NCBI GenBank assembly: GCA_002269645.1 | Contig: NIVC01000559.1 | Location: forward strand, 1 to 39,231 | Length of the DNA stretch: 39,231 nucleotides | Source of the DNA: Macrostomum lignano | Lineage: Eukaryota | Reading direction: 5' to 3' | Program-made: the position numbers and the translations under genes | Notes under the pieces: generated by a model | Database searches by the model: none | Told to the model about the DNA's origin: nothing | The model's input: the letters and a program-made list of their open reading frames with translations, nothing else | In this document: one piece after another, positions 6,644 to 38,649 of the stretch | Numbering within the stretch: position 1 is the stretch's first letter | Layout: each line of letters starts with the position of its first letter

Positions 6644-7209
6644 CTACATAAGGTAGATTACCAGCCGATCAGCGTAGCCGCTGCCCACTCTGCTAGGAGC
6701 ATCCTGGATGTAGTTGTAAACCAGAACTGGCAGAGATCCCTTGAAGCCCTCGCTAATCCAGGGACAGGAGTCTTCCTTGTCCGAAACGACAAAGAAGCTG
6801 CGCTCGGTGTCACAGCCCCCGCCCGTACTGCTGATTGAGAAATGCCGCTTTCTGGATGAGTCGCCATTCAGCGAAAACTGGCTGAATTCAGTCCGGCCGA
6901 TCCAAAATGGGTACGACGACTCGATCCGCTCCTTCGAGAACCAGTTTTCGCGAGTCAACTTGTCCGTATCCTTGGCAACGTTGAAAATCACCTGCGACAC
7001 GACGCTCTTGCCTTCGCGCATCTCAACAACCATCCTTGACTTGCCCGACTGCTTTACAGTCAAGGCCAGCTGGTCCAAGAGATCGGAGCGGTACACTGGT
7101 GGCAGCGAACCGTCTGCCAGCATTTTGAAGTCCTGCCTATGCGAAAACACGTTAAGCGCCTCTCGGTCGACATTTGCCTTGATTGTGAACAGAAGCTGCT
7201 TGTATTCTT
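6644..7209 (-). CDS. Terminal exon D (module 13)
   Basis: Acceptor ttacag|AA GAA TAC AAG CAG CTT CTG TTC. Open to TAG; ends ADRLVIYLM*, without the linker carried by the other exons. Confidence 0.87.
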
Positions 7210-10200
7210 CTGTAAATAGAGGAAATTAAAGAGTGAAACATGAAATAAAATTTCATTAGCTTTAATAATCAACTACGTCAGTAGTAGCTTTAAAGGGTCC
7301 GGCAAACCCGTTTAATATAAAGCAAATACGACTCACCGAAAATAATAATTTTTTTGTATTCGGCACGTGGGTCAAGGAACTCGTTTGACAGATAAATGAT
7401 CAATCTGTCCGCGTACCCAACGCTTTCGTGGAACGATCGACCCTGCTCTCGGTTGTAGGCCAGACTCGGAGGAGAGCCTCGCCAGCCTCGAGTTACCCAG
7501 TCGCAGCTGCCGCGCGAGTCAGACACCATGATGAAGCCTGAATCTCTGGTGCAACCTCCATAGTGGTTGCTGATGTAGAATTTTCGGCTAGCATCCCCTT
7601 CAAAGAAAAGTAGTTGAACTCTTTCCGACTAATTGGATAAGGGTAAGATGAGTACAGTCTTAACAGCGAAAACCAGTTCTCTTTGTCGAGCTTGTCAGTG
7701 TCGGTGGAAACATCGAATGCCACTTGAGAGACGACTTTATTGTCTTTGCGCATCTCGACGACCATCTTGGTCATTCCCGACTGCCTCACAGCTCGAGGAA
7801 GCTCGTCGATGAGATCGGATCTGTAGACCGGAGGCAGAGATCCATCGGCAGGCATTTTGTAGTTTTGTTGATGTTTGAATGTCTCCAGAGCCTTCAACTG
7901 CACGTTCGGAACAATAGTGAACAACAGCTGTTTGTCGTTTTCTAAATTGGAAAGTGATGCAGGTTTGAATATTTTTTACAGTACTTATTTCTGGTGAATA
8001 AGTTTTGTTCACCTTAGTAAGTAATATTCGAGAATTTAATGGCTTTACATGCACCGATTCAATTTATTCGTAACCTCACACACAAATCTTTCCATTCGAG
8101 TAGAAATCAAGTTAAATACAGTAAAATCCGATACAATTCATACATAGTATTTGCAGACAGTTAGCTTTGGAAGGTCAAACAACATGGATCGGCACGACCG
8201 GCTGGTTACCAATGCTCTCGCTCCAAGCCGAGCTCAGAGCAATTGAAAGAGCTCCGAACCTCCTAGAGCACCACAGGGAGGAGCGGTGGAGAGTCTGGGT
8301 AATCACTGACAGCAAAAGCGGCCTGCAGTCACTGCGCGGGCTCTCAAGGAACCCGATCGCCGTGGAAACCCAAGTCCAGGTTGCCATGAAGTAAGAGTCA
8401 CCATCGAGTGGAGATGGATACCCGCACATTGTGGCCTCTGGAACGAGAAGGCAGACCGTCTGGCTGGAGCAGCCGTCCATACTCAGCAGGAGGACACCCC
8501 GGTCCTCGCCAGTGTTGTAGTGAAGCAACTTGCCCGGCTGAGACGCGCACGCACCAGCGGTCCCGAAAAAAATACGGAACCTGAGGACCGGCCAAGGACC
8601 CCTGTTACGGCAGCAGAGATAAGGCGAACAGCTTCATGAGAATGAAAACGGGCTACTCACTTGAACTCGGAGTCTACTGCAAAAGAATAAGGAGGGTGCA
8701 GAACGGCCACTGCAAGATGTGCAGCGGTGAGGAGGAAACCGTGACTCACATAGTCCAATGCCCAGCAACTTTCTGTCAGAGAAGTGAGTGAGACGTGATG
8801 GCGCTGAAAGACCCAAACCACTTCAGAAAAGGCGTCCCCAAATTCTGGAAGTGGTAGAGAAGCAAACCACTAGAACAGCAAACACCAGGCAATACGGTAG
8901 CGTGAGTAGCAAAAAAAAACACAACAACAAAAACAACAACACCAACAACAACAACAGCGGCAGCAGCAGCAGCCCGCCGGCCCCAACAGGGACCGCGTGC
9001 CCCAGTCCATCGGGGGCACGGTCATGGACGCTGCCTTGTCGTGGCGACCCGGCTTAATCCTGTCGTCGGCTCCTGCCGGTTGCCGGCGGCAGGAGAACCA
9101 AAGTGTCTACCCTTCGGCTATCGACAGGGACACAGCGGCTGCCTGCGTCCCTGCCGCCCTGCTATCAGGCAGGCGCTCCGACTCGGCCGGGAGTGCGACA
9201 GACCAGGCGCCGAAGCCAGGGTCGGCCGGTCCACCACTCGCCCCAGGCGAGGCTGCGTCTGGTCCCCTGGCTGACTCGTCTGGGATGACGTTGGCGCTGA
9301 CTGGCTCCGGTGGGAGGATAACATGCCATGCTCCCACGCTGGCAGCAACCACCCTTCCGGAGTCCAGGATGATGCGTGGCTTGTCCCCTCCCTGCCCGGA
9401 GTTCGGAGGCGCTTCCTGGAAGGCTAGCCCTTTACAACAACAGCAGTAGCAGAAGCCCGTCGTATCAACAGGTACGGAAAGCCGTGTTATTAAAAATGAA
9501 GTGGCTATGGTCATAGGCATCGCCTCTCCGAGATGACTCGGATGGCCTAGGGCTTGCCATACCACGATACCTGCTACCAGGCAACCACCTAACCCGGTGG
9601 GCACACACTACTTGGCCGCGGATTACGGAGGTGATTATTTCTCTGAGCTCCAGCTCGTCCGATGCCCCAAGTTCTGGCACTTCTTATTTTGCCACTGCTT
9701 GCAACCCAAGCCCCAACGACTGCAAACGCTCCGGCCAGACTCTCAGAAAAGGTCTCCCATTCCTACACTGCCAAAGCACACCATGAAGAAAACTTGCCAA
9801 AAAATTTATTACAGCTGGGTCTAACGCTATCTACGGAACCAGGTATGGACGTATAGCGCCCATCACACTCTTGGTCCTGATGAGCGACACTCTGAGACTC
9901 GGCAGCCACGCCACCGCTCCGCAGTCACTCCAGACCCTGTGCCTTTCCTACGACGCCAGTATTCACACCGGGACCATCCCGCTCAAATGCGCCGGCCAAG
10001 ACTGCACCTCGTTTTGCCATCGCACGACAGCATGCAGAGAAATCCCCAGGTACAAGGGGTGCACTCTCGGAATTTGTCCGAGCCACTCGGCGATACCGGA
10101 CCCCGTCAAGTCGATCGCCGGCCTTCGCGCTGGCGCCCTTTGTGAAAACTGCTGCGACCCGGGATCCGAACATGGCCTGTTGCGGGGGGCTGAAGCCACA

Positions 10201-13200
10201 AAGTCCGCGCCGTCATCCGCTGATCCCTTGCAACCGCTGGGTCGACTATTGCCACAAAGTGTACACCGGCCTCAAAAGAACCGTTGCAACACAGAATGCC
10301 TTTAGCAGCATGCATTGCATCACCCCCGTGCCACCCGGAGGTGACCCCGGAGCACGCCAACCGCTCCGCCTGCTTCCGCACCATCGAGCGCCAGGAGTCA
10401 ATTCGGTTTCTCCAATGGAACGCCGGTGAGGTCTCCCTCAAGATTGCCGAACTTCAAGACCACACCAAACAACAGGAACAACCAATCAGCATAAAGGCAA
10501 CAAATACTAACCTAGCTTTAAATAACACACTTACCAAACATGACTGTCCGATTGAACTCCTCTCGCAGTTCCGCCACCGAGTCCGTCAGGTAGATTGTGA
10601 ACCGATCAGCATAGTCCACTCCGCTCCTTAAGGTGGCAGTTCGGTATCTGTTGTACGCCAGCACTGGAGCCGAGCCCTTCCAGCCTTCGTTGGCCCAGGT
10701 GCACCCATCGCGTTTGTCGGACACCATCCAGAAACCTCGATCATTGACACAACTACCGTAAGAAAATGAGGCCAAAAAGCGACGTTTCAAAGGGGCGTCC
10801 CCGTTAATACTAAAGTAGTTCATGCTTTGTTTCGGATCGATATTGAATGGATACGACGAGACGAGTCGAGAGCGCGAGAACCAGTTCATCAGTGTGATCT
10901 CGTCGGTCTTCTCTGACAAGTCAAACACCATCCGAGCGCCCACGCGATCGTCCTTCTCCATCTCAGCGACAATATTTGTCTTTCCTGATTGCTTCACAGT
11001 GAGGGCGAGTTGATCGAGCAGGTCAGATCTGTAGACAGGAGGCAGAGACCCGTCAGTCGGAGCCTTGTAGTTCTGCTGGACAGAGTACGCAGACAAGGCC
11101 TCGGTGTTGATATTGGATTTGATCGTGAACAGCACTTGCTTGTTGCCATCTGCAATTATTAGATATTTAAAAATTCGCCATCAACGTTGGTTACATTGAT
11201 GTTTGTTTTTTTCTGAAGCTCCAAAGTTGAGACGTTTACAGGTAGAATCCTAAAATTAGTGATCTGTTTTTTACCAGTACTCTCCTATGCGTCATAAAGA
11301 AGTAACTCAAACTTAACTTAACTAAAGCGGGTCAATTCAATTACGACTAACCATACACTGCTTTTGATCACATGCACTGGACCTTACGAGCATTTAGAGC
11401 AAAATATTGGCATAAAGCATATCGTACCAACAATGAGCGGCTTCTTAAACTCGGCCCGTGGATCCAGTACCTCTTTCGCAAGATAAATTATTAGCCTGTC
11501 CGCGTAGCCCACGCTTTCGTGGAACGATCGACCCTGCTCTCGGTTGTAGGCCAGACTCGGAGGAGAGCCTCGCCAGCCTCGAGTTACCCAGTCGCAGCTG
11601 CCGCGCGAGTCAGACACCATGATGAAGCCTGAATCTCTGGTGCAACCTCCATAGTGGTTGCTGATGTAGAATTTTCGGCTAGCATCCCCTTCCAAAGAAA
11701 AGTAGTTGAACTCTTTCCGACTAATTGGATAAGGGTAAGATGAGTACAGTCTTAACAGCGAAACCAGTTCTCTTTGTCGAGCTTGTCAGTGTCGGTGGAA
11801 ACATCGAATGCCACTTGAGAGACGACTTTATTGTCTTTGCGCATCTCGACGACCATCTTGGTCATTCCCGACTGCCTCACAGCTCGAGGAAGCTCGTCGA
11901 TGAGATCGGATCTGTAGACCGGAGGCAGAGATCCATCGGCAGGCATTTTGTAGTTTTGTTGATGTTTGAATGTCTCCAGAGCCTTCAACTGCACGTTCGG
12001 AACAATAGTGAACAACAGCTGTTTGTCGTTTTCTAAATTGGAAAGTGATGCAGGTTTGAATATTTTTTACAGTACTTATTTCTGGTGAATAAGTTTTGTT
12101 CACCTTAGTAAGTAATATTCGAGAATTTAATGGCTTTACATGCACCGATTCAATTTATTCGTAACCTCACACACAAATCTTTCCATTCGAGTAGAAATCA
12201 AGTTAAATACAGTAAAATCCGATACAATTCATACATAGCATTTGCAGCCAGTTAGCTTTGGAAGGTCAAATTGCGCGCGGTGTACCAAGAGAGTGCATTG
12301 GTACCACCGTCATCAAAGTTTGTTTTACGGGAAAAGTGAGTAGGAAGCGGGTGCAAGAATGGAAGAAGGGAGGTGGGTGGAAGTGCAAAGAATACGGCTC
12401 GTAGGCTGCGGACGAAGCAAAGTGCGCCAGGAGCAGATGGATGGTGAACAGAGAGACGGATGTTGGTAACGCCGAGAAGGAGAGGGAAGAGGTCGGAAAG
12501 CAGCCCGGTTGGAACGTGTTACAGTGGAACTGCGGTCATCTACACGCTAAAAAACGGAGCTGGCCGGGCTGCTGGAGAAAAAAGAAATCGACATAGCGCT
12601 GCTTCAGGAAGCGAAAATAAGGATGGAAGATCCGCACCCGTACGTATCAGGGTTCAAGCTGCTGAAGCAAGACAGGCACAGAGAAGCAGGATGCTGGAGA
12701 GCGAGAGAAGTAGGACTGGCTGTCTACATTAGAGGTCTATGCTACAAGAAGCGGCAGGCCCCGGGGCGGGCTTGATGGAGGGCGGCTTGAAGCGATGGCG
12801 ATGGAGGTCCAGAAAGCTTGTGGAGAGATGCTGTGCGTGCTTAACTGCTACATGCCCCCAAATGCGGATGGTAATTGGAAGGTAAGCGCTGAATAGAATG
12901 CTAGGGAGCGAGAGATGGCTAGTCGGTGGCGACACCAATGCCCACGACGAGGTGTGGGACGGTACAGAGGCTTGACAGTATGCTCAGGTGTAAGAAGGGC
13001 TCTACCAGGTGGAGGCTGGCGGAAGACAGAGGGAGCAGGCGTTTGAATAGGCCGAACTAGAACCGACTGGTTTTGGAGCTGATGAAGAAATGGGAGCAGA
13101 AGGTACCAAGATTCGCGGATGTGAAGAGGGTGATGTCCAGCAAGAAGTGGAGAGGAATTATGAGTAACATCCAGGCGGAAGGGGTTCGACCGGTCGAGAC

Positions 13201-16200
13201 TGAGGAGTGCAAGTGTCTGATTTATGTCCCATTAGCAATTGGACATAAGCAAATGGGCATCGCTTGTATCAAGGAGGCCGGAGTTAAAGCGGATGTGATT
13301 AACTTTACGGATGGATCGGTTGACAGCGATGCCGCTGGTGTAGGTGGCATTGTCGTCAAGGGCAGAAGCATGGAGCTGACGTTAGAAAGGAGGAAAGTGC
13401 CCGGAGGCAAGCTCGCGTCTTCCACCAGAGCTGAAATGTACGCTTTGTGGGCGTTAGGGTTAGTTGTGCGCCTGCCTAGCAGTCTATGGTTTGTGTGTAC
13501 GCTTGGTGTCCCCCTCCTATGTACGTATGGTGGGGTGGTTGTTGCGAGAGACTGAGCTAAATATAATATAAGGTATTGCACGCCTCTTAGTGAGCGATTA
13601 ATTGTTGATTTTTTCTTGTTAGCTAAATTGACGGCCCTCAGACTTGTTCAATTTCTACAACATGGCGCCCGAACTGAAATCACAGTAAAGTGAAAGTATT
13701 GGCTCTATAGTGCTCCAGTGACTCAGCGATTTCTTATCAGTTCAGCATGGATTCCAAAAAGCGTGGAGTTTTGAGAGCGAAGGTCACCAGATTGGCTCAG
13801 AAAGCCCTAAGACCTGCTCAACTCAGAGGCTGCTGAGGATGACATCGACAGCGTACTGGAAGCCCTGCACCTCAAAAAGCAACAGCTGCTGGCAGCGGAT
13901 GAAGAGCTGTCCGTTGAGATCGACGAGAAAATACTCCAATGGGAAGTGGAGAAGACGATGGAGTACGAGCTGTTGGCTGGGAAGATGATTTCGAGTCTCG
14001 CCAAGCGACTGCAGAGTCTTCAGGCCGAGCGAGAAAGCCGCATGCAGGCTAAAGAGCAACAGCAAACGAAAGAGTCAACTCCATCCACGTCACCGCGAGA
14101 GAATGCTGCTTTGACGACTACGCCAGCCATTAGGCTGCCCAAGCTGCCGCCAATAGCATTCAATGGAGATCGTACGCAATGGACTGCATTCTGGGACAGC
14201 TTCAGCTCCAGCATCCACGACAACCCGAGCCTCAGCGTCGTCGACAAGTTTAGCTACCTGCAATCGTGCCTTTCAGAAGCCTAGAATTCGATCGCCGGCC
14301 TTAACATCACAGCCGAGAACTACAAGATCGCGATCGATAACCTGCAACGACGGTTCGGATCCTGGAGTGGAGCCGTGCGCGAGCATCTGGCGTAGTTCTC
14401 GGCGCTGACTTGTTCAGGTGCTTCAGTCCACCACCTCAGAAACTTCTACTATCAAGTCAACGGCAATGTCCGCAGCCTGGAGAATCTCGGGGTGAGTGTT
14501 ACTTCATACGAGACTATGTTGCTGCCCAAGTTGCTAGCGAAGTTACCGGAAGTGGTCCGCCGCGGGATGCTTAGAACTGCCAGGATGGTTGCCGTACGGC
14601 CTTTCTATGGTGACAGTCAGCTACAGGTGACGGATGAGAACAGCTTAGATTTGATTAAGGAATTCCTCAGTGTCTTGGACTTAGAAATCCTGGTTAGAGA
14701 AGAAGCTGTTCTCGGAGCAGGAGTTCAAGCAGCCAGTTCATCGAAGGCTTCCACGGTCGACAAGCAAACCAAGGAAGGCACGGTATCCGCTTTACAGACG
14801 AAGGCTACGAAGGCTACGAAGGTCGCCAGAGCCAGCAACGTGTGTCCTTTTGTGACGCTGAACATGCTCCGGAGAGTTGCAATCGACTGGTGGATGTGCC
14901 TTCTAGGCTTAAGTTCTTGAAAGAACAAAGACGCTGCTTCAATTGCCTCTCTAAAGGTCATGCCACAAAGACTTGTTATCAAAAGAAGCGGCGTGACGTC
15001 TGCAAGTTACAGCATCATCCCAGTCTCTGCGCTGCGCGAGTAGAACGGCCACCGAGACCGACAGACAAGACGCCTAGTTGCACCTTCGATACGGCGGGTT
15101 CAGGGAAGAAGAAAGTCGAACAGTCGGCCGCTCAGAGTGTCAAGAGCCACGAAGTAAAGACTATGGCGATGGTCACCAAGGCCCAGACAGTAGTTCTTCC
15201 TACTGCGGGAGCTGTACTAATTTCACAAGATGGCTGCAGTGAAACACGGGTTCGAATTCTCTTTGACTCTGCGAGCAACCGTTTCTTCATCCCGTCGGGC
15301 GTAGCTGAGCGTATGGGACTCTGTGTGATCGGCAAAGAGACAATACAATGGAAGTGAGGACATTTGGAGGCACCGAGCCCAAGGTCTTACAAACGGAAAA
15401 GGTCGAGTTCCAACTTCGCAAGCTTGACAGCGTCACTCCCTTTACATTGCGCACCAACACAGTACCCTACATCTGCTCTCATCAGCTAGTTGTCAACAGC
15501 TTGCGCAGCGATCACTTCCCACATCTGGATCTGGCAGACTGGGACATCGGCAGCGAGCAGCATCCAGAGATCAACATCCTCATAGGAGCTTACCAGTTCT
15601 ATGACCTTGTCACAGGACAAGTGGATCGTTCTGAGAGCAGCACCGGGCTGGTTGCGGTAGCAGGTCAGCTTGGGTGGCTCCTGTGTGGCTCCTTGTCCGA
15701 CGCCATTTCGGCAGGAGGACTGGAAGACAAAAAAGAGCAAGTGCTTCTCTGCTGCACACACGGAGCCAACAAAGGCCTTGACAACTGTTCCATGGAGACG
15801 TTTTGGACGCTTGAAGGCATTGGCATTACCAGCGCATCCGAACCCGAGCATCGGCCTTTCGAATTGGGCACTCAATTCTAGGATGGGCGCTACTCAGTCA
15901 AGCTGCCGTGGAGGCTTACCAAGGAGGAATTGACCTTACCGGACAACTTCGACGTGGCATTCAAGAGGCTTCAGGGCAACCTGAGCAGGCTGCGCCGTGA
16001 ACCCGCACTGCTGCAGGAGTACCACCGCATTCTGATGAGCCAGAAAGAAGCTGGAATAGTGGAGGAGGTTCCCGACGGCACGCACCATGTTGTCCACTAC
16101 TTGCCTCACCGAGCAGTGATTCGTCCTGAAGCAGATTCGACGAAGGTTAGAGTGGTTTTCGATGCCAGTGCTAAGCGAGGTCGGTGGAGCTCGTCCTTGA

Positions 16201-19200: not shown

Positions 19201-22200
19201 TGACTTTTCGAAAGCTGACAGTGACTATTGACATCTGACTTCTCAGTCTTTATCTCTCCTTGGTTTCAATCTTCAAGTTCTTATCCCAGCATATCGTGCT
19301 CGTGCTCTGTGAGTAAACTTTTCAACGTGACATTTGGTTTTCTCAAATTTACAGTACGCTGGTGACGGTGCTTACATTTTTGCTCCTTGGCGCCTTTTGT
19401 GTTCCTGCTTTTTCGATAATTTACAGTACTCTGGTGATGGTGCGTTACATTTACAGTTACGCTCGTAAGTTTCAAATCTGCTGTAATGTTGGTTCGTATT
19501 TTGTTGTTTATTTCGTTTGTTTTTTTGCTATTCGTTTCGTTTAATTTCATTTAAGTTCAAAGCGAGTTTCGTTTTTCGAATATCAATGTTAAGTTCTGTA
19601 ATGATGAAGCATCATTAGGGGGAGTGTTAGGGTTAGTTGTGCGCCTGCCTAGCAGCCTATGGTTTGTGTGTACGCTTGGCGTCCCCCCTCTCTGTACGCA
19701 TGGTGGGGTGGTTGTTGCGAGAGACTGAGCTAAATATATTATAAGGTATTGCGGGCCTCTCAGTGAGCGATTAATTGTTGATTTTTTCTTGTTAGCTAAA
19801 TTGACGGCCCTCAGACTTGTTCCATTTCTACAACAGTGGGATATCAGCAATAGAAGCAGAAGCTGCAGCAGCCCATCGTATCAACCGGTATGGAAAGCCG
19901 TGTTATTAAAAACGACGTTCTTTTGCCTCTACTGAGCCACTCGGCGATACCGGACCCCGTCAAGTCGATCGCCGGCCGTTGCGCAGGTGCGCCCTTTGTG
20001 AAAACTGCTGCGACCCGGGATCCGAACATGGCCTGTTGCGGGGGCTGAAGCCACAAAGTCCGCGCCGTCATCCGCTGATCCCTTGCAACCGCTGGGTCGA
20101 CTATTGCCACAAAGTGTACACCGGCAACACAGAATGCCTTTAGCAGCATGCATTGCATCACCCCCGTGCCACCCGGAGGTGACCCCGGAGCACGCCAACC
20201 GCTCCGCCTGCTTCCGCACCATCGAGCGCCAGGAGTCAATTCGGTTTCTCCAATGGAACGCCGGTGAGGTCTCCCTCAAGATTGCCGAACTTCAAGACCA
20301 CACCAAACAACAGGAACAACCAATCAGCATAAAGGCAACAAATACTAACTTTGCTTTAAATAACACACTTACCAAACATGACTGTCCGATTGAACTCCTC
20401 TCGCAGTTCCGTCACCGAGTCCGTCAGGTAGATTGTGAACCGATCAGCATAGTCCACTCCGCTCCTTAAGGTGGCAGTTCGGTATCTGTTGTACGCCAGC
20501 ACTGGAGCCGAGCCCTTCCAGCCTTCGTTGGCCCAGGTGCACCCATCGCGTTTGTCGGACACCATCCAGAAACCTCGATCATTGACACAACTACCGTAAG
20601 AAAATGAGGCCAAAAAGCGCCGTTTCAAAGGGGCGTCCCCGTTAATACTAAAGTAGTTCATGCTTTGTTTCGGATCGATATTGAATGGATACGACGAGAC
20701 GAGTCGAGAGCGCGAGAACCAGTTCATCAGTGTGATCTCGTCGGTCTTCTCTGACAAGTCAAACACCATCCGAGCGCCCACGCGATCGTCCTTCTCCATC
20801 TCAGCGACAATATTTGTCTTTCCTGATTGCTTCACAGTGAGGGCGAGTTGATCGAGCAGGTCAGATCTGTAGACAGGAGGCAGAGACCCGTCAGTAGGAA
20901 CCTTGTAGTTCTGCTGGACAGAGTACGCAGACAAGGCCTCGGTGTTGATATTGGATTTGATCGTAAACAGCACTTGTTTGTTGCCATCTGCAATTATTAG
21001 ATATTTAAAAATTGGCCATCAACATTGGTTACATTGATTTTTGTTTTTTCTGAAGCTCCAAAGTTGAGACGTTTACAGGTAGAATCCTAAAATTAGTGAT
21101 CTGTTTTTTACCAGTACTCTCCTATGCGTCATAAAGAAGTAACTCAAACTTAACTTGACTAAGCGGGTCAATTCAACTACGACTAACTATACACTGCTTT
21201 TGATCACATACACTGGATTTACGAGCATTTAGTGCAAAATATTGGCATAAAGTATATCGTACCAACAATGAGCGGCTTCTTAAACTCGGCCCGTGGATCC
21301 AGTACCTCTTTCGCAAGATAAATTATTAGCCTGTCCGCGTAGCCCACGCTTTCGTGGAACGATCGACCCTGCTCTCGGTTGTAGGCCAGACTCGGAGGAG
21401 AGCCTCGCCAGCCTCGAGTTACCCAGTCGCAGCTGCCGCGCGAGTCAGACACCATGATGAAGCCTGAATCTCTGGTGCAACCTCCATAGTGGTTGCTGAT
21501 GTAGAATTTTCGGCTAGCATCCCCTTCCAAAGAAAAGTAGTTGAACTCTTTCCGACTAATTGGATAAGGGTAAGATGAGTACAGTCTTAACAGCGAGAAC
21601 CAGTTCTCTTTGTCGAGCTTCTCTGTGTCGGTGGAAACATCGAATGCCACTTGAGAGACGACTTTATTGTCTTTGCGCATCTCGACGACCATCTTGGTCA
21701 TTCCCGACTGTCTCACAGCTCGAGGCAGCTCGTCGATGAGATCGGATCTGTAGACCGGAGGCAGAGACCCATCGGCAGGCATTTTGTAGTTTTGTTGATG
21801 TTTGAATGTCTCCAGAGCCTCCAAGTGCACGTTCGGAACAATAGTGAACAACAGCTGTTTGTCGTTTTCTAAATTGGAAAGTGATGCAGGTTTGAATATT
21901 TTTTACAGTGCTTATTTCTGGTGAATAAGTTTTGTTCACCTTAGTAAGTAATATTCGAGAATTTAATGGTTTTACATGCACCGATTCAATTTATTCGTAA
22001 CCTCACACACAAATCTTTCCATTCGAGTAGAAATCAAGTTAAATACAGTAAAATCCGATACAATTCATACATAGCATTTGCAGACAGTTAGCTTTGGAAG
22101 GTCAAACAACCAGGAGACCCAGTGGGTCGTCAATAACAACAATATCAATGACAGCAGCAGCAGCAGCACAGCCCCCACATCTCCATCCCTACGGCACGTT

Positions 22201-25200: not shown

Positions 25201-28200
25201 CCTGTTTCAGTACAAGCTTTAAATGCTGCATGCATATTCAGCCTACAGATGCTCAACTCGAAAAACCCCGGAATCTGGAGTGAGCTTCCACAGCCAGCCT
25301 CTCCAAGATGCTGCTCTTGAGAAATGGAAGGAAGCACGAGAATACTTTGAGCTGGCGAAGTTCTCCAAGATTTGCTCTCGCGATTTTTATTCTAATGACT
25401 TCATTCGCGGATACCAACGTCACATGCAATAAGAGAAACGAGTCGCTATCAAGGAGGTGTCTGAAGCCTGGAGCAGTTCCCTCCATCTTCCTGAATCGGC
25501 GGAACGCTCCCATCTACTTGTGATTTGATAAGAAGGCACCGCGAGCAACCACAGTGGCATTGTCTGAGCGCATGGAGAGAGACCTGGAATTGGAGTCTTT
25601 CTGGAAGCTGACTTCATTGCTGAGACAGACTTTCGGTTTCAGGAGATTCAGGGCAAGTTGGAGCTGGAAGCAACCAAGCTAGCTGGATTTCAGACGGCTA
25701 TCCAAGGCAAGCTCTGCATCTACATGCTAGAGGCAGCCAGTGTGCCGCGTTTCCTGCTACTAGGGTTTGCAATCCCGGGATCCCGGGATTAGGAGCCAAA
25801 TTCCGGGATTTGAATCCCAGGATTAAAATTTGTCGCGATTTACCGGGATTGATATCCCGGGATTATCCATGGCTGGAATTCGGATCCCGGGATTAAAATC
25901 TGTGAATCCCGGGATTTTCGGGATTGATAAGATGGAACAGACGCTTTCAATTTTAAATTTTCATCATGTACTTTTCAGTTCCACTTCACTTTACCATGCA
26001 ATTTTTTAGAATATCGTTTAAGTCATCCGAATAATGAAATGTGTGAATCGTAAAATTGTTTTCTAGGAATGAATTCAAAACTGTTTTGTATGAAATTTGA
26101 GGTCCCGAATCCGGCGACAAATTTTTGTTATTGTTTTTACATAAAGTGTTCTAATATGAACATAATTGGGCCCACAAGTATGTTATTATACTGCGCTAAT
26201 TTCCGTTAATTGCCTCACGTCGCGTGGCACCTTTTTAAACCCCACATCAGATTTAAATGTGAAGCTTATTCCAATTAAATTTTGATACTTGATTTGCTTC
26301 TTTACTACTAATTAGTACTTTTATACTACTTACTCAAATACGTCACACAAGATAATGCTGTTTTTATCTACAAACAGATCATTAACTCTATAACAGTCAA
26401 AACGGAAGCAAAAAACGCTTAGCGCATATTTTGACTTAAAATTTCAACCCAGAAGCTTAAAAAATCTGTATAGTTCTGATCCCGGGAGTGAATACCGGGA
26501 TTGGCCGAATTCTGGGATTAAATCCCGGGATCCCGAGATTACAAATACTAATCCCGGGATATCCCGATCCCGACAATCCCGGGATTGACAGAATTGGCGA
26601 TACCGGACCCTGTCAAGTCGATCGCCGGCCGTCGCGCTGGCGCCCTGGGTGAAAACTGCTGCGACCCGGGATCCGAACATGGCCTGTTGCGGGGCTGAAG
26701 CCACAAAGTCCGCGCCGTCATCCGCTGATCCCTTGCAACCGCTGGGTCGACTATTGCCACAAAGTGTACACCGGCCTCAAAAGAACTGTTGCAACACAGA
26801 ATGCCTTTAGCAGCATGCATTGCATCACCCCCGTGCCACCCGGAGGTGACCCCGGAGCACGCCAACCGCTCCGTCTGCTTCCGCACCATCGAGCGCCAGG
26901 AGTCAATTCGGTTTCTCCAATGGAACGCCGGTGAGGTCTCCCTCAAGATTGCCGAACTTCAAGACCACACCGAACAACAGGAACAACCAATCAGCATAAA
27001 GGCAACAAATACTAACTTTGCTTTAAATAACACACTTACCAAACATGACTGTCCGATTGAACTCCTCTCGCAGTTCCGTCACCGAGTCCGTCAGGTAGAT
27101 TGTGAACCGATCAGCATAGTCCACTCCGCTCCTTAAGGTGGCAGTTCGGTATCTGTTGTACGCCAGCACTGGAGCCGAGCCCTTCCAGCCTTCGTTGGCC
27201 CAGGTGCACCCATCGCGTTTGTCGGACACCATCCAGAAACCTCGATCATTGACACAACTACCGTAAGAAAATGAGGCCAAAAAGCGCCGTTTCAAAGGGG
27301 CGTCCCCGTTAATACTAAAGTAGTTCATGCTTTGTTTCGGATCGATATTGAATGGATACGACGAGACGAGTCGAGAGCGCGAGAACCAGTTCATCAGTGT
27401 GATCTCGTCGGTCTTCTCTGACAAGTCAAACACCATCCGAGCGCCCACGCGATCGTCCTTCTCCATCTCAGCGACAATATTTTCTTTCCTGATTGCTTCA
27501 CAATGAGGGCGAGTTGATCGAGCAGGTCAGATCTGTAGACAGGAGGCAGAGACCCGTCAGTCGGAGCCTTGTAGTTCTGCTGGACAGAGTACGCAGACAA
27601 GGCCTCGGTGTTGATATTGGATTTGATCGTGAACAGCACTTGCTTGTTGCCATCTGCAATTATTAGATATTTAAAAATTCGCCATCAACGTTGGTTACAT
27701 TGATGTTTGTTTTTTTCTGAAGCTCCAAAGTTGAGACGTTTACAGGTAGAATCCTAAAATTAGTGATCTGTTTTTTACCAGTACTCTCCTATGCGTCATT
27801 AAGAAGTAACTTCGTTAGCACTTTATTAAGTATTCGTAAAGTAACTGATTGTGCGAATGGTAAGCCTTCTCTGTTTTTCTGTTTAATTTTGGATTGTTTT
27901 ATTTTAAGTTCATTTATTTGGATCCGAGTAGCTGAAGCTATTGCAGTTTGTGTAAGGCCTACGAGTAAGCTGACTTTTTCTTGGCGTCAAAAATGTAACT
28001 GTTTAGTTTGTGCAAACACTTTCGGGACTAGCGTAGAGTAAAATTTAACGCCGTAAAAATAATCAGTCAGTGATATTTAAGGACTGTTTTACGATATTTA
28101 AGGGGGTGTTTCACGAACTGCTTCTTAAGACTGAGTCCTAAGTTCCAACTTAGGCTCGAACTTAGGACTGAGCCGTAAATGCGTTTTACAAACACTTAGG

Positions 28201-31200: not shown

Positions 31201-34200
31201 TTGTTGCATCATGTTGACTTAATTAAAATGATTTTACCATCTTTCTGTGTAATTGCCTTTGATTCCGATGGTTCGGCAAAAAATGTCACACAAACATAAA
31301 TAAAATGAAAATTTGATTGAAGAAAAAAAGAAGAAGGAAACAGTGTGAATGTTCGTTTTAGCATTCCTTTTCCTAAAATTCTATTCAGTAAAAACTGACT
31401 TAGAAGAATAAATAAAGAGATTTGTCTGAACTAATGATACATACATGCTTCAACTATTAGCTTACCGATAATGAGTGGCTTCTTGAACTCGGCCCTGAGG
31501 TCCGGAACTTCCTTCGCAAGGTAAATCAGTAGCCTGTCAGCGTATCCTGCGCTCTCTTCGAACGGCTTTCCAGGTAGTCGACTGTAAATCAAGGTCGGAG
31601 CAGATCCCCTCCAGCCTCGAGTCACGTAGTCGCAGTGACCGCGCGCGTCCGACACAAGAATGAAGCTCGTCTCTCGGTGGCATCCGTGGTGCCAGTTGTT
31701 GATGTAGAAGCGTCGCTTCGAGCTTCTCTCGCCTTCCAGAGAAAAGTAGTTAAACTCTTTCCGATCGACCGAGTACGGATAAGACGACTCAAGTCTCAGC
31801 TCCGAGAACCAGTTCTCTTTGTCGAGCTTCTCTGTGTCGGTGGAAACATCGAACACCACTTGGGAGACGACTTGATTGTCGTCTTTGCGCATCTCGACGA
31901 CCATCTTGGTCATTCCCGACTGCCTCACAGCTCGAGGAAGCTCGTCGATGAGATCGGATCTGTAGACCGGAGGCAGAGATCCGTTGGCGGGCATTTTGTA
32001 GTTTTGTTGATGCTCAAATGTCTCCAGAGCCTCCAAGTGCACGTTCGGGATAATGGTGAACAACAGCTGCTTGTCTTTTTCTGCAACAGAAGAACATGAC
32101 AAATAATCATTACAAAGATCTTGCCCGACGTTGTAATTTGATTTTTGTCTCTGCCTCCTAACCACCCTTATCATTGCATATTTAACCGCAATTTTCAGTT
32201 ACAATTGTGATATAAATTCTACGTTAATGCATTTAATGCGCATGACTGATACGGTCTGACCTCAATTTTCATGTGAATATCTACTTTGTAAACGCCTTGA
32301 AATTTTGTCTAGATACTAAAAGAGATATAGAGCTCGAAAAAACGGGATTTCCGTCTATAAAGTGTTACGAGATACGAGCTAGTTTGAGATCTCGTACCAA
32401 ACATGACCGTCCGATTGAACTCCTCTCGCAGTTCCGTCACCGAGTCCGTCAGGTAGATTGTGAACCGATCAGCATAGTCCACTCCGCTCCTTAAGGTGGC
32501 AGTTCGGTATCTGTTGTACGCCAGCACTGGAGCCGAGCCCTTCCAGCCTTCGTTGGCCCAGGTGCACCCATCGCGTTTGTCGGACACCATCCAGAAACCT
32601 CGATCATTGACACAACTACCGTAAGAAAATGAGGCCAAAAAGCGACGTTTCAAAGGGGCGTCCCCGTTAATACTAAAGTAGTTCATGCTTTGTTTCGGAT
32701 CGATATTGAATGGATACGACGAGACGAGTCGAGAGCGCGAGAACCAGTTCATCAGTGTGATCTCGTCGGTCTTCTCTGACAAGTCAAACACCATCCGAGC
32801 GCCCACGCGATCGTCCTTCTCCATCTCAGCGACAATATTTGTCTTTCCTGATTGCTTCACAGTGAGGGCGAGTTGATCGAGCAGGTCAGATCTGTAGACA
32901 GGAGGCAGAGACCCGTCAGTCGGAACCTTGTAGTTCTGCTGGACAGAGTACGCAGACAAGGCCTCGGTGTTGATATTGGATTTGATCGTGAACAGCACTT
33001 GCTTGTTGCCATCTGCAATTATTAGATATTTAAAAATTCGCCATCAACGTTGGTTACATTGATGTTTTTTTTTCTGAAGCTCCAAAGTTGAGACGTTTAC
33101 AGGTAGAATCCTAAAATTAGTGATCTGTTTTTTACCAGTACTCTCCTATGCGTCATAAAGAAGTAACTCAACTTAACTTAACTCAAGCGGGTGAATTCAA
33201 TTACGACTAACCATACACTGCTTTTGATCACATGCACTGGATTTACGAGCATTTAGAGCAAAATATTGGCATAAAGTATATCGTACCAACAATGAGCGGC
33301 TTCTTAAACTCGGCCCGTGGATCCAGTACCTCTTTCGCAAGATAAATTATTAGCCTGTCCGCGTAGCCCACGCTTTCGTGGAACGATCGACCCTGCTCTC
33401 GGTTGTAGGCCAGACTCGGAGGAGAGCCTCGCCAGCCTCGAGTTACCCAGTCGCAGCTGCCGCGCGAGTCAGACACCATGATGAAGCCTGAATCTCTGGT
33501 GCAACCTCCATAGTGGTTGCTGATGTAGAATTTTCGGCTAGCATCCCCTTCCAAAGAAAAGTAGTTGAACTCTTTCCGACTAATTGGATAAGGGTAAGAT
33601 GAGTACAGTCTTAACAGCGAGAACCAGTTCTCTTTGTCGAGCTTCTCAGTGTCGGTGGAAACATCGAATGCCACTTGAGAGACGACTTTATTGTCTTTGC
33701 GCATCTCGACGACCATCTTGGTCATTCCCGACTGTCTCACAGCTCGAGGCAGCTCGTCGATGAGATCGGATCTGTAGACCGGAGGCAGAGACCATCGGCA
33801 GGCATTTTGTAGTTTTGTTGATGTTTGAATGTCTCCAGAGCCTTCAACTGCACGTTCGGAACAATAGTGAACAACAACTGCTTGCTTTTTTCTGAAATGT
33901 TTATATTTGAGTTTTTGTTATTGTATTCTTAGTGCTAAGCAGCCAATGGCTTTTTGTTTGATTGGTATTTCACTACTGAATTTTTCCATAAATTCTTTTG
34001 ATCAAATGTCTTACCAAACAGGACCGCTTTTGTGAACTCTGGGCGCAGTTCGTCCACGTGGTTTGTCAAGTAGACCACGAAGCGGTCCGCATAGTCCACC
34101 CCGGTGCGAAATGGCGCCGTTCTGAATCTGTTGTATAGCAACACTGGCGCGGCTCCCTTCCAGCCCTGTGATCCCCAGTTGCAAGGATCCTTCCTGTCTG

Positions 34201-36334
34201 TGACAATCCAGAATCCTAAATCGTTGTCACATCCCTTTCCCGTGTCCGTTACAGAGAATCCTCGCTTTAAGGATGTGTCACCATCCACGCTAAAGTAGTT
34301 CAGATGAATTTTCTTGGAAATCTGATAAGGGTACGCTGCGACGAGTCTATCTCTTGAGAACCAATTGAGTAAGGTAAGCGAATCCGTGTCAGTTGCAACG
34401 TCAAATACAAGTCTCGCTACTACTGCGTTGTTTTTGCGCATCTCTGCAACCATCTTGCTACGACCTGAACGCCTCACGGTTTTATCCATCTGGTCCAGCA
34501 GGTCCGACCGGTAAATTGGGGGCAGGGAGCGATCGGATGGAATCGGGTAGTCCTGCTGATGCTTGAATGTGTCCACTGCTTCTTTCCCAATGTTAGGCGT
34601 GATTGTGTACAGGATTTGCTTGTCTCCGTCTGAAAGCCAATAGAAATAGATTAAATGGTTCGTGCCAAAAAGTTGCTAACACAATCAAAGATGCTGTATA
34701 ACTCTGGCGTTCGTTTTCTCAATACATGAACCTCTAGCTTCTTAAAGGCCGGTTCACATTACACTAATAGCTCTGCACGTCAAAGATGGCTTAAATCAAT
34801 GTACAGCTGGTTCAGATCCATTTTTAAACTTACTTCAGTATTTGAATGATATCTAACCTTTGGAACTTCTTGCGGCAATTTGAACCGGTCTTTGACTATG
34901 ACTCGCAGCTATTAGGGCATTAGAATTAAGATTTCTTATTTACTGCTTCGTTTAACTTCCCTAAGTATAGTGCCCAAAGTAATATACTTGCACAATGCTT
35001 TTGCAAAAATGTTCGCACGCACCAACAATGAACGGTTGCCTGAACTTCCATCGTCTGTCCTCGACCTCGTGCGTGAGGTACACAAGCATCCGGTCGGCCG
35101 TGTCGACGCCAGCATGGAACGGCTTGTTCTGCAGCCGGTTGTACAGCAGCAACGGCGGGGAGCCGCGCCAGTTGCGGTTGGCCCAGTTGCAACTGTCTCT
35201 GGCATCTGAGATAGCGATGAACCCGGCGTCAACATGACAGCCTCCATAGTTGTAGCTGATGTAAAACCGCCGCTGCTCGCCCACATCTCCATCCAAGAGA
35301 AGTAGTTGAACTTGGTCTTGTCCACCAGGTAGGGATAGGAGGACTCCAGCCGTTCTAGCGAGAACCAGTTGTCTAAGGTCAGACTGTCGACATCCTTAGT
35401 CACATTGAAAACCAACTGAGCCACCACTGAGTGGTCCTTGACGAGCTCCATCACCATCTGGGTCATGCCCGAGTCTTTCACGGTCCGCGACAGATCGTCC
35501 AGCAGGTCGGACCGGTACAAAATCGGCAAATTATCGTCGATTGGCGCGCGATAGTTTTGTTGCTGCCTGAACGTTTCCAGCGCGCTCTTGTGGATGTTGG
35601 CCTTGATCGTGTACAGAAGCTGTTTTCTTTCCGCTGTAGCAGATCAGGGTGACTTTCAACTATAATTGCCTTAGTTATTCGATAATGTTAATAGTTTCAG
35701 TAAAGTGCTCACCGTGGAAGAAGGGCTTCCTGAACTCGGCTCGAAACTCATCCACAGTGTCGGTGAGGTACACCAGAAACTGGTCGGCATACGCGGCGCC
35801 CTGTTGCAGCGTGCGGTCCTTAAATCTATTGTAGATCAGCGCCGGTGCGAGGCCCTTCCAGCCATTGCGGCCCCAGCCACAGGATCTCTGGCGCCGGACA
35901 CGAGCCAGAAGCCGCGGTCACCATTGCAGCCGTCGAAGCTCGTTGCTATGAAGAACCTGCGCTCCTTGTTTGCGTCACCCTCGATGGAGAAGGCGCTAAA
36001 CTTGGCCACGTCGTCAAGGCGGTAGGGCCAGGCGCCGATCAGGCGGGACGGCGAGAACCAGTTGAACTGGTCTATGCTGTCCGGGTAGTCGCCGACATCA
36101 AAGACGACGCGCATCACGACGGCCCTGTCGACGCGCATCTCGGCGACCATGTAGGTTTGTCTAGACGGCGGACAGTGTCGGGCAGCTCGTCGAGCAGGTC
36201 GGACCGGTAGACGGCCGGCAGCGGCTCATTGGGCGACGGGGCTGGCCGGTTGCCGTTGCCCCGGGTGACGAACGCCTTCTGCGGCTCCTCGCCGATGTTG
36301 CTCCGAATAGTGAACAGCAGCGTCTTGCCGTCCT
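6644..36334 (-). CDS. Multi-exon gene for a large modular protein (>=13 tandem ~200-aa modules, one per exon); 5' end not in view; likely extracellular
   Basis: 13 homologous exons bounded by (c/t)AG and GT, all joined in phase 1. Shared motifs: KQ(L/V)L(F/Y)TI, LPPxYRSDL(L/I)D, NWFS, NYFS, C-x15-C, YADR and (I/V)YL. The last exon ends in TAG at 6644-6646. Summed corrected coding length is 7916 nt. Confidence 0.85.
7337..7941 (-). CDS. Exon A' (module 12, A-type with a distinct C-terminal linker)
   Basis: Acceptor tttag|AA; donor ATT TTC G|gtgagt. 605 nt with one deletion at ~7601 (c versus cc in the other A copies). Ends YLSNEFLDPRAEYKKIIIFG. Confidence 0.83.
8185..8960 (+). mobile_element. 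5'-truncated LINE 3' end (RNase H, CCHC-like motif, AAC-rich tail)
   Basis: QAELRAI...VITDSKSGLQSL, then WIPAHCGLWNEKADRLA in another frame, then CKMCSGEEETVTHIVQC and caacaacaac repeats at ~8920-8955. Confidence 0.78.
9900..10465 (+). mobile_element. LINE 5' fragment (Cys/His-rich PHD-like region plus the start of an AP endonuclease)
   Basis: Cys-rich segments (CAGQDC..FCH; IPCNRWVDYCHKVYTGL) followed by RFLQWNAGEVSLKIAEL, the endonuclease N-terminal motif. Confidence 0.62.
10535..11149 (-). CDS. Exon B (module 11)
   Basis: Acceptor ttgcag|AT; donor TTT G|gtaagt. 615 nt, open. Confidence 0.88.
11428..12032 (-). CDS. Exon A (module 10)
   Basis: Acceptor tttag|AA; donor G|gtacga. 605 nt with one deletion at ~11761 (aaa versus aaaa in the copy at ~7668). 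Confidence 0.83.
12380..13451 (+). mobile_element. Internally deleted LINE (AP endonuclease joined to RNase H)
   Basis: VLQWNC...DIALLQE (~12515-12612), GGDTNAH (~12925) and FTDGS...SSTRAEMYAL (13305-13446). Most of the RT is absent. Confidence 0.75.
13452..13662 (+). repeat. 5' LTR
   Basis: cgttagggttag...ctacaaca (TG changed to CG); about 12 differences from the 3' LTR by hand count. Confidence 0.93.
13663..13674 (+). promoter_or_regulatory. Primer-binding site, tRNA-Lys(UUU)-like
   Basis: TGGCGCCCGAAC immediately after the 5' LTR equals the first 12 nt of the known tRNA-Lys3 PBS (TGGCGCCCGAACAGGGAC). Confidence 0.8.
13747..19175 (+). pseudogene. BEL/Pao gag-pol, disrupted
   Basis: LPKLPPIAFNGDRTQWTAFWDSF (BEL gag), CCHC knuckles (CFNCLSKGHATKTC), ILFDSAS protease, RVVFDAS / ADIEKAFLQI / YVDN RT, Pao RNase H (SIPRLELLGA), CVVCRR, SDNAKTF and APWQGGFWER integrase; several stops and frameshifts. 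Confidence 0.93.
19625..19835 (+). repeat. 3' LTR, preceded by the polypurine tract agggggag (19617-24)
   Basis: tgttagggttag...ctacaaca, TG...CA termini. Confidence 0.93.
19934..20303 (+). repeat. Copy of the LINE 5' fragment, duplicated with the B exon
   Basis: Near-identical to 10080-10465 and 26596-26970, at the same position relative to the B donor. Confidence 0.9.
20373..20987 (-). CDS. Exon B (module 9)
   Basis: Acceptor ttgcag|AT; donor TTT G|gtaagt. 615 nt, open. Confidence 0.88.
21263..21868 (-). CDS. Exon A (module 8)
   Basis: Acceptor tttag|AA AAC GAC AAA; donor GTT G|gtacga. 606 nt, open. Confidence 0.88.
22359..24830 (+). mobile_element. Decayed LINE: candidate PWWP, PHD finger, AP endonuclease and RT N-terminus
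   Basis: LVWAKL (22527), CSRC..H...WHCREC (~23040-23150), VLQWN / LLETK / SDLNAKH endonuclease motifs, and AAGLDRVH...LFNLSW...AGFRRGRS RT start; truncated within RT. Confidence 0.8.
25223..25520 (+). pseudogene. THAP domain fragment
   Basis: AYRCS...GVSFHSQP...KW...SKICSRDF...DF, then LKPGAVPSIF in the next frame. Confidence 0.75.
25761..26550. mobile_element. Non-autonomous TIR element rich in atcccgggat motifs
   Basis: Left end tagggtttgcaatccccggatcccgggatt versus right end aatcccgggatcccgagattacaaatacta (~24/30 inverted match). Palindromic cccggg motifs are clustered near both ends; no TSD found. Confidence 0.65.
26596..26970 (+). repeat. Copy of the LINE 5' fragment, duplicated with the B exon
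   Basis: Near-identical to ~10089-10465. Confidence 0.9.
27040..27653 (-). CDS. Exon B (module 7)
   Basis: Same splice sites as the B copies at 20373 and 10535 (donor gtaagt). 614 nt; one G missing at ~27482 relative to the other B copies. Confidence 0.83.
28642..28740. repeat. Perfect 34-bp-arm palindrome
   Basis: ttgcgtagtaggtaaggggctgaaataatggcca, then a 31-nt loop, then its exact reverse complement. Confidence 0.92.
29723..29820. repeat. Second palindrome with a near-identical loop
   Basis: tgtatagtatgcaac..gttgaataatggcca / tggccattattcaac..gttgcatactataca. Confidence 0.9.
31466..32080 (-). CDS. Exon C (module 6, A-related)
   Basis: Acceptor ttgcag|AA AAA GAC AAG; donor ATT ATC G|gtaagc. 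615 nt, open. Confidence 0.88.
32398..33012 (-). CDS. Exon B (module 5, B-type)
   Basis: Acceptor ttgcag|AT GGC AAC AAG; donor ATG TTT G|gtacga. 615 nt, open. Confidence 0.88.
33287..33891 (-). CDS. Exon A (module 4, A-type)
   Basis: Acceptor tttcag|AA AAA AGC AAG; donor ATT GTT G|gtacga. 605 nt with one deletion (cc at 33792-93, versus ccc in the copy at ~21768). Confidence 0.83.
34015..34629 (-). CDS. Exon E3 (module 3)
   Basis: Acceptor tttcag|AC GGA GAC AAG; donor CTG TTT G|gtaaga. 615 nt, open (ORF 33935-34576). Confidence 0.88.
35023..35633 (-). CDS. Exon E2 (module 2)
   Basis: Acceptor tacag|CG GAA AGA AAA CAG; donor ATT GTT G|gtgcgt. 611 nt with one deletion (aa at 35295-96) joining ORFs 34936-35529 and 34961-35296. 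Confidence 0.8.
35713..36334 (-). CDS. Exon E1 (module 1)
   Basis: Acceptor cgcag|AG GAC GGC AAG; donor TTC CAC G|gtgagc. 622 nt. Two single-base deletions (ttt at 36156-58, gg at 35882-83) split it into ORFs 36114-36347 and 35836-36150; restoring them gives 208 codons with no stop. Confidence 0.8.
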
Positions 36335-36683: not shown

Positions 36684-36809
36684 AAAAGTAGAATTAAGAA
36701 GGTGGGCGCTATCATTTTTTATGCGACATGTTTCGCCTCGCGTCAGGTATCGTCAGGCTCTTAAAATTAGTAGCGATTTAATTGTTCATTAATACTTAAC
36801 ATTAAGACT
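36684..36809 (-). repeat. Left arm of a ~125-bp inverted repeat (Penelope pLTR-like, hammerhead-like core)
   Basis: Near-exact reverse complement of 37993-38119. Confidence 0.85.
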
Positions 36810-37057
36810 GGGGATATCTGTATACAATTAACAGTGATTCTCTACAAGTAACAAAAAGACAGAAATAAGAGACAGAGAGACAACCGAGATAAAGCTCAAA
36901 TAAAGTTACTGCAAAGAAATCATCCCTAGACATTCAGAGCATCCCCAAAGATAGTAAGCATACGATTCAAGCATCCCCAGATAAAGCACTGCATCCCCCA
37001 AATAGCAACATCCTAGCTGCACCCCAGAAGGAACATACCCCCCTCGATAGCTCTTTG

Positions 37058-37845: not shown

Positions 37846-37854
37846 CATAAATGT

Positions 37855-37873
37855 TCTCTCTCTCTCTCTCTCT

Positions 37874-37910
<37 letters not shown>
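37855..37910. repeat. (CT)n microsatellite
   Basis: Direct reading. Confidence 0.97.
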
Positions 37911-37913
<3 letters not shown>

Positions 37914-37992
37914 GCAACTCTGTGAGCGCTCCGTCGGACTGTACAATGTACTGTTAATTTATATACATTTCTGACTTTTATCGACCGTTTTT

Positions 37993-38119
37993 AGTCTTAA
38001 TTGTTAAGTATTAATGAACAAATAAATCGTTACTAATTTTAAGAGCCTGACGATACCTGACGCGAGGCGAAACATGTCGCATAAAAAATGATAGCGCTCA
38101 CCTTCTTAATTCTACTTTT
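37993..38119 (+). repeat. Right arm of the ~125-bp inverted repeat, with a hammerhead-like core
   Basis: CTGACGA (38047-53), cct/agg stem, then GAAACATGTC (38069-78). Confidence 0.85.
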
Positions 38120-38620: not shown

Positions 38621-38649
38621 AAAATTGTTGCAATAGCTACTTGCTTTCT

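Follow-up and report, generated by a model that had tools for sequence, protein, structure and literature searches.

A minus-strand array of thirteen one-module exons in Macrostomum lignano and the unassigned domain family to which its modules belong

Exon modules that are flanked on both sides by phase-1 introns typify mosaic extracellular proteins, such as arrays of Ig, EGF, FN3 and Sushi domains, and are the subject of Patthy's exon-shuffling rule. Fibrinogen-related domains (FReDs, PF00147), which are found in ficolins, angiopoietins, tenascins and invertebrate FREPs, are also extracellular globular domains of approximately 200 residues and act as multivalent glycan or ligand binders. Both systems are compared here with a locus of the flatworm Macrostomum lignano. 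The DNA analysed, referred to as the window, comprises 39,231 nucleotides (nt) of contig NIVC01000559.1 (assembly GCA_002269645.1, positions 1 to 39,231 of the forward strand), and its minus strand carries an array of 13 similar exons that encode an unassigned domain. In a preliminary description, which was made from the letters of the window, the array had been taken for one gene with one module per exon that codes for a secreted protein.

With classical phase 1-1 mosaic proteins the locus shares several properties. Each exon encodes one module, all 12 internal exons have phase-1 flanks, and the terminal exon starts in phase 1. Further common traits are a signal exon that ends in phase 1 (found here in paralogue P0019), the tandem duplication of exons, and a mobile module that is combined with varied partner domains. 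The differences are that the module family is undescribed and that 606-624 nt is exceptionally long for a cassette of one exon. The exon architecture as such is ordinary, namely that of a classical phase 1-1 cassette array.

Exon structure of the array

A six-frame listing of the open reading frames (ORFs) of the window displays many similar minus-strand ORFs of about 200 amino acids (aa). By means of tblastn and four module queries, exactly 13 module copies were located on the minus strand from position 36341 to 6650, and no further copies were found elsewhere in the window. It is very probable that the array constitutes most of one M. lignano gene, in which 13 exons encode one module each. 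In 5' to 3' direction these are m1 (35713..36334; type E1, 622 nt), m2 (35023..35633; type E2, 611 nt), m3 (34015..34629; type E3, 615 nt), m4 (33287..33891; type A, 605 nt), m5 (32398..33012; type B, 615 nt), m6 (31466..32080; type C, 615 nt), m7 (27040..27653; type B, 614 nt), m8 (21263..21868; type A, 606 nt), m9 (20373..20987; type B, 615 nt), m10 (11428..12032; type A, 605 nt), m11 (10535..11149; type B, 615 nt), m12 (7337..7941; type A', which has a divergent 3' end, 605 nt), and the terminal exon m13 (6644..7209; type D). The order of sequence types is E1-E2-E3-A-B-C-B-A-B-A-B-A'-D and had been given correctly in the preliminary description. In m13, the domain ends with ...ADRLVIYLM and is followed by the stop codon TAG (6646-6644) without a linker tail.

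All 13 exons are preceded by an AG acceptor, and each of the 12 internal exons ends with a G that is followed by GT. The donors behind the first twelve copies have the form …G|GT(A/G)(A/C)G, where the bar marks the exon boundary, and all 25 splice sites are intact. The two starting bases of each exon complete a codon and the final G opens the next one; the introns are thus in phase 1. As this holds for all introns between modules, the reading frame survives the joining, duplication or loss of any number of modules. The codon at the boundary had been considered a Gly position, which is true for the GGT of the unspliced read-through. After splicing, however, the split codon encodes Asp, Glu or Ala (G+AT, G+AA, G+AG, G+AC, G+CG). 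Six of the twelve introns are short (79-393 nt), namely m1-m2 (79 nt), m2-m3 (393 nt), m3-m4 (123 nt), m4-m5 (274 nt), m5-m6 (317 nt) and m12-m13 (127 nt), and therefore offer no space for separate promoters or signal exons. The long introns hold transposons.

Exon lengths of 606-624 nt, all divisible by three, had been reported for the internal exons. Without correction, only six of the 12 lengths are divisible by three; the statement holds after the insertion of seven single bases, two of them in m1 and one each in m2, m4, m7, m10 and m12. Once these bases are restored, in-silico splicing of the 13 exons yields one continuous ORF of 2,638 aa, which contains no internal stop codon and ends at the natural one. 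The signal exon is additional, which agrees with the predicted size of at least 2,640 aa for a protein that is made up of this domain only.

The top matches of the module profile are M. lignano proteins, i.e. gene models deposited in UniProt and WormBase ParaSite. Three of them correspond to the array. A0A1I8G1E0 (P0002, 678 aa) comprises a signal peptide and m1-m3 without frameshifts. A0A1I8G0W3 (P0151, 2,137 aa) consists of a part of m5, m6-m7-m8-m9, approximately 360 aa of antisense transposon, and m10-m11-m12-m13; its C-terminus is 100% identical to m13. A0A1I8J960 (P0001, 980 aa) contains m10-m13. Outside local defects of A0A1I8G0W3, the modules of these models are 96-100% identical to those of the window, follow each other in the same order and are linked by the same phase-1 junctions. 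The residues at the junctions (…PLIV|D|GNKQ…, …TVMF|E|NDKQ…, …IIIF|E|EYKQ…) are those that phase-1 splicing predicts. Public models thus use exactly the predicted junctions, which substantiates the reading as one gene with one phase 1-1 exon per module. Compared to the gene in the window, the three models are fragmentary: no model unites all 13 modules, and m4 is missing from each. Moreover, they contain artefacts, namely exons of antisense transposon sequence, a micro-intron and a stretch that is out of frame. A0A1I8J960 and A0A1I8G0W3 have exonised the antisense strand of the Pao element that resides in intron 9 of the window. This points to the same locus as their origin, or to a duplicate with the same insertion. 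A Logan contig (L001, cluster mate of P0159), which was considered as a candidate transcript, is unrelated to the locus.

In A0A1I8G1E0, the sequence MAWRDLRGWLLVLLWATASVEA, which was judged by eye to be a signal peptide, is located directly before module 1. The N-terminal junction reads …MAWRDLRGWLLVLLWATASVEAADVASPDGFAF|EDGKTLLF… and is followed by m1, m2 and m3. This arrangement supports the claim that the product is secreted, the signal exon being outside the window; it presumably lies upstream, beyond the window's end. In that case, signal peptide and 13 modules together would give a secreted product of about 2,670 aa.

The automatic names of the three models (DUF4091, Peptidase S9, TSPc, MULTIHEME_CYTC) contradict each other, and none matches the findings described here. 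Conflicting UniProt names were also noted for near-identical family members across P0001-P0005 and P0151-P0158 (TSPc, Peptidase S9, CBM_X, DUF4091, MULTIHEME_CYTC, HZS_alpha, Fibrinogen C-terminal, Jacalin). Pfam scans of the window modules and of P0004 detected none of the families that appear in these names. The automatic names of M. lignano family members should not be trusted. The gene is already present in the databases in the form of fragmentary and misnamed models, and its novelty is lower than had been implied.

The module family and fibrinogen-related domains

A module is made up of approximately 205 residues, about 188 of which are folded. The remaining tail of about 15-17 residues is modelled with low confidence and serves as a linker between modules. 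No match was found in Pfam-A for the window modules or for relatives that consist solely of two modules, nor in NCBIfam for the modules. Among PDB sequences, phmmer identified nothing below E=0.6, and a profile of 62 sequences nothing at E<=10. An AlphaFold model based on 62 aligned relatives has an alpha/beta fold with a predicted local distance difference test (pLDDT) score of 93.8 and a predicted template modelling (pTM) score of 0.90. An earlier run with 10 window-derived rows had given a pLDDT of 72.5 and meaningless fold matches, and was redone with the 62 sequences. A Foldseek search against 350,542 PDB chains retrieved nothing at E<=0.001, and a search against a viral structure library was likewise empty. 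In the 62 sequences, residues Cys133, Cys149, W89, F90, F112, G116, R122, F124, D136 and A180 are fully or almost fully conserved. Each module contains only two Cys residues, and Cys133 and Cys149 (module numbering) probably form one conserved disulfide per module.

A HMMER profile search with the module alignment identified 548 proteins at E<=0.001, while none of the 151 candidates from a word-indexed protein search with one module was significant. Named relatives come from Macrostomum, three Branchiostoma species and hybrids, Ptychodera flava, Anneissia japonica, Acanthaster planci, Elysia crispata, Pecten, Argopecten, Nematostella vectensis, Desmophyllum pertusum, and a Myxococcota bacterium. 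The traced relatives hence belong to a flatworm, amphioxus, a hemichordate, echinoderms, molluscs, cnidarians and Myxococcota. All of them are either "uncharacterized" or bear clearly transferred names. ZP, EGF/cEGF, C-type lectin, Sushi, fn3 and TIG domains occur as partner domains, and single-module relatives have hydrophobic N-termini that resemble signal peptides by eye. We infer that the module belongs to an unnamed extracellular family of several marine invertebrate phyla and some Myxococcota. The preliminary description had spoken of an unnamed domain of marine invertebrates without a Pfam family. This assignment is upheld, and HMMER, structure prediction and Foldseek revealed no confident match of the module to a characterised family.

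Arrays of at least five modules occur only in M. lignano among the relatives surveyed. A protein of 2,723 aa with nine "stretches" (P0057) looks spurious and is, by eye, an RTX-like repeat protein. Paralogue P0019 (222 aa) from assembly Mlig_3_7 has a signal exon of 21 codons, which ends with …G|GT in phase 1, and one module exon. Paralogue P0162 from the same assembly has an N-terminal-domain exon that ends with …G|GT and two module exons. In the Macrostomum paralogues P0003, P0004 (L002 3001-3660) and P0013, one to five modules are preceded by an additional N-terminal domain of about 200 aa, which comes after the signal peptide. A single exon with a phase-1 end encodes this domain, and Pfam has no match for it. 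A literature search with the locus tags of paralogues (Mlig031677 and others) returned no papers. Internal introns divide the coding sequence of the domain in Ptychodera, Elysia and Nematostella, and Elysia has three exons per module; among the genes examined, the one-exon form was found only in Macrostomum. It seems that the Macrostomum lineage has lost the internal introns, which yielded the single-exon cassette.

FReDs were the only recurrent fold in the PDB search and accounted for most of the top 50 matches with both AlphaFold models. This raises the question whether the domain is a very divergent FReD that lacks the A subdomain, in which case the gene would encode a giant FREP-like lectin. 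The template modelling (TM) scores were 0.30-0.36 for full-length matches and 0.21-0.24 for three short partial ones. No match was significant, and the best one (E=0.13, probability 0.51, TM 0.35) falls short of the TM score that is usual for a shared fold. Additional hints came from sequence motifs. The motif YCDxxxxGGGW is located upstream of the domain in 13 of 167 scanned sequences, among them P0021 from Myxococcota and the cnidarian proteins P0070 and P0122. NF040941 (GGGWT_bact), a domain of 46 residues, was confirmed in combination with the module family in the Myxococcota proteins P0021 and P0047, and Pfam Fibrinogen_C matches positions 4-52 of P0021. Finally, in the hhalign alignment the first residues of the module (LLFTIK...) fall on GGGWTVFQ.

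These hints are opposed by the properties of the modules themselves. Five window modules had no match to Fibrinogen_C (PF00147) even at E<=1, and neither had paralogue P0004; the PDB-wide profile search mentioned above was empty. The FReD signature motifs GFG...EFWLG, FST.D.DND and NLNG are absent from the window modules, and so is the A subdomain, whose motif CDM..GGGW is contained in none of the 13. NF040941 covers only a short N-terminal subdomain and has no match in the window modules. A comparison of the 62-sequence profile with an alignment of four FReDs by means of hhalign resulted in a probability of 0.6% for 47 columns, which comprise only the GGGW region, and this region is missing in the window modules. 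Of the four FReD sequences, only that of ficolin-2 was verified, as it matches PDB ficolin-2 over the full length (E=4e-150). At the sequence level, membership in the FReDs was rejected on the basis of the hhalign result, and altogether we regard a divergent FReD as unlikely.

A feature shared with FReDs is that some relatives of the domain follow a genuine FReD-type A subdomain at the place where the B and P subdomains would be expected. The position of the module behind an A subdomain may reflect very remote homology to FReDs or a domain replacement. A tentative proposal is that the module represents an undescribed extracellular fold, distributed from cnidarians to chordates and present in bacteria as well, that was ancestrally located behind a fibrinogen-type A subdomain in place of the FReD B and P subdomains. 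Macrostomum would have reduced it to one intron-less phase 1-1 cassette and multiplied this cassette, which would have produced a secreted binder with 13 modules and a novel ligand specificity.

Duplications, frame lesions and alternative readings

The seven module types are 45-57% identical to each other, except for types A and C, which share 80% of their amino acids. Between types, synonymous sites are saturated, dN/dS (the ratio of non-synonymous to synonymous substitution rates) is about 0.1-0.2, and the splice positions are identical. For m6 and m8, dS is 0.67 and dN is 0.13, which corresponds to a ratio of 0.20. Since seven types of saturated divergence have kept identical splice positions at such ratios, the conserved array is not due to chance. 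The B copies are 99-100% identical and differ mostly or only at synonymous sites; m5 and m9 differ at synonymous sites only. Among recent copies, substitutions amount to 1.6% in exons versus 3.8% in introns.

Self-comparison by BLAST revealed a unit of approximately 2.2 kb, which consists of a B exon, an intron of about 275 nt, an A exon and flanks. Copies that are 95-99% identical are located at 10080-12270 and 19934-22106, with partial ones at 26596-27811 and 32395-33898; at 7360-8179, only an A exon and its upstream flank are present. The array is thus essentially composed of (A-like, B) pairs with older modules before them, and m6 (type C) is an older A-like copy with 80% identity. Old duplications generated the seven module types; they were followed by the more recent tandem duplication of the 2.2-kb unit and then by the insertion of transposons into some introns.

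A GC-rich repeat (55-60% GC) at 10080-10530, 19934-20370 and 26596-27037 lies immediately 3' of three of the four B exons and is part of the duplicated unit. Its minus-strand ORF (e.g. 26548-26946) was read as coding in A0A1I8G0W3, which is probably a prediction artefact. Positions 8000-10450 of the window are GC-rich as well.

Half of the internal exons (m1, m2, m4, m7, m10 and m12) are broken in frame, which the preliminary description had covered only by the word "corrected"; m3, m5, m6, m8, m9 and m11 are intact. Seven frame-restoring insertions were located by a brute-force search. They correspond to lesions in m1 (near 36156 and near 35882), m2 (near 35297), m4 (near 33792, GGG to GG), m7 (in an A-run near 27484), m10 (in a T-run near 11761) and m12 (near 7600-7605). 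An alignment of near-identical copies of types A and B narrowed four lesions to single missing bases. Every one of the seven lesions is a 1-bp deletion within or next to a short homopolymer run, for example a shortened A-, T- or G-run. Insertions, longer indels and nonsense substitutions were not found in 7.9 kb of exon sequence. Five of the six broken exons are read through intact in other M. lignano models; for example, m1 and m2 are intact in A0A1I8G1E0, m10 in A0A1I8J960 and A0A1I8G0W3, and m12 in A0A1I8J960. The error signatures of A0A1I8G0W3 differ from those of the window and comprise an out-of-frame stretch in m7 and a micro-intron of 11 aa at the m12 lesion. The assemblies of M. lignano are PacBio-based and have only 32-64% error-free bases according to REAPR; many transcripts lose their ORFs upon mapping to these assemblies (PMC5730564). 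Since five of these six exons have intact counterparts in other models, the seven lesions are most likely consensus errors of long-read assembly and not biology.

If the seven frameshifts were real, the array would be a pseudogene in decay or a non-functional copy within a neopolyploid genome. As they stand, six of the 12 internal exons are indeed out of frame. A0A1I8G0W3 seems to have a lesion of the frame in m12 as well, at the same position or close to it, which is bypassed by the micro-intron. Duplicated non-repetitive blocks further make up about 180 Mb of the genome, which would leave redundant copies free to decay (PMC5730564). Among recent copies, the rate of indels in exons is about 40% of that in introns, which by itself fits error or decay. 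However, decay would have to be reconciled with lesions of one kind only, with 25 intact splice sites, with the intact counterparts of five broken exons, and with purifying selection on substitutions, which is detectable even between copies that are 99% identical. We therefore consider a pseudogene improbable.

A mis-assembled expansion or collapse of near-identical repeats might also have falsified the number of A-B units, which are 97-99% identical over about 2.2 kb in assemblies known to be error-prone and redundant (PMC5730564). Yet the flanks of the units differ, with a Pao long terminal repeat (LTR) element in intron 9 and a different, PHD-containing insert in intron 7, and the substitutions are unit-specific. 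Moreover, the order C-B-A-B-[transposon]-A-B-A'-D recurs in A0A1I8G0W3, a model that stems from a different assembly. An artefactual unit number is thus quite improbable.

It is highly improbable that each module is a gene of its own or gives rise to its own mature mRNA, e.g. with a spliced leader on each exon: although every module begins behind an AG acceptor, secreted single-module paralogues exist, and spliced-leader trans-splicing occurs in M. lignano (PMC8629364), no module has its own ATG and signal peptide, in the single-module paralogues the signal peptide is encoded by an exon of its own, the G|GT donor is kept in the same phase at all 12 internal exons, several introns measure merely 79-127 nt, and the modules are joined in database models.

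As a whole, we deem it likely that the array is a 13-module gene for a secreted protein, and that its frameshifts are assembly errors. Several points, besides the indel rate in exons, weigh against this explanation. The m4 frameshift has no independent intact counterpart, and no model links m3 to m4 to m5. Support for the junctions comes from database gene models, one of which, A0A1I8G0W3, shows prediction artefacts, with an exonised antisense transposon and a micro-intron that skips 11 aa. The signal-peptide exon was not detected in the window by tblastn with the N-terminus of A0A1I8G1E0. A few residues of this model deviate from those of the window, and it may represent an allele or a duplicate locus of the neopolyploid genome. 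Lastly, all searches for a characterised relative (Pfam, NCBIfam, PDB sequences, fold) failed, and the proposed function is deduced from context.

Inserted elements, proposed role and implications

Intron 9 contains a Pao/BEL-type LTR retrotransposon on the plus strand (13453-19835) with matches to Peptidase_A17, an integrase core and DUF5641. Its LTRs are direct repeats of 210 nt (13453-13662 and 19626-19835) that are 95% identical. The coding region is split across at least six consecutive ORFs in different frames, which fits decay or the same 1-bp assembly errors. A second inserted element, also on the plus strand, occupies positions 22359-24801 in intron 7; it consists of a run of ORFs, one of which (22860-23270) has a PHD-finger match, and no match to a reverse transcriptase was found in this element.

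Further repeats were noted in the window. A foldback-like element (36684-38119) is located between module 1 and the signal exon outside the window. Its inverted arms of 118 nt are 97% complementary and 1,200 nt apart, and within the arms lies a tandem array of about 35 copies of a 23-nt unit (37054-37855). Short tandem arrays are found at 38200-38447 (24-nt units, about 9-10 copies) and 38640-38785 (18-nt units, about 8 copies). A 39-nt tandem repeat at 2894-3330 (11.2 copies, 92% matches) gives rise to Pro/Ser/His-rich ORFs in several frames on both strands and is probably a minisatellite rather than a gene. An ORF of 130 aa on the plus strand (1567-1959) has no Pfam match even at E<=1; judging by its C-terminal part, …RWVPHHLNTTQMQARVEFANFILNKF…GDETWVYL, it may be a remnant of a mariner/Tc1-type transposase.

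With respect to function, the product might resemble beads on a string in the extracellular space, where 13 similar surfaces would allow for high-avidity binding or cross-linking. A repetitive extracellular material such as glycan, matrix or mucus could serve as the ligand. Judged from the architecture, a secreted multivalent binder or cross-linker that acts by avidity is a possibility that we put forward with reserve. The lectin-like, adhesive or immune-recognition role suggested in the preliminary description is likewise hypothetical.

For M. lignano, the locus illustrates how 1-bp deletions of long-read assemblies split a gene for a protein of 2.6 kaa into many small ORFs. The part that is worth following up is the domain itself, which has no entry in Pfam or NCBIfam, no solved relative and no convincing fold match. 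The fusion of relatives to an A subdomain leads to a testable hypothesis on the diversification of fibrinogen-like recognition domains. A definition of the family would give a name to hundreds of "uncharacterized" invertebrate proteins and would correct the misleading names in M. lignano.

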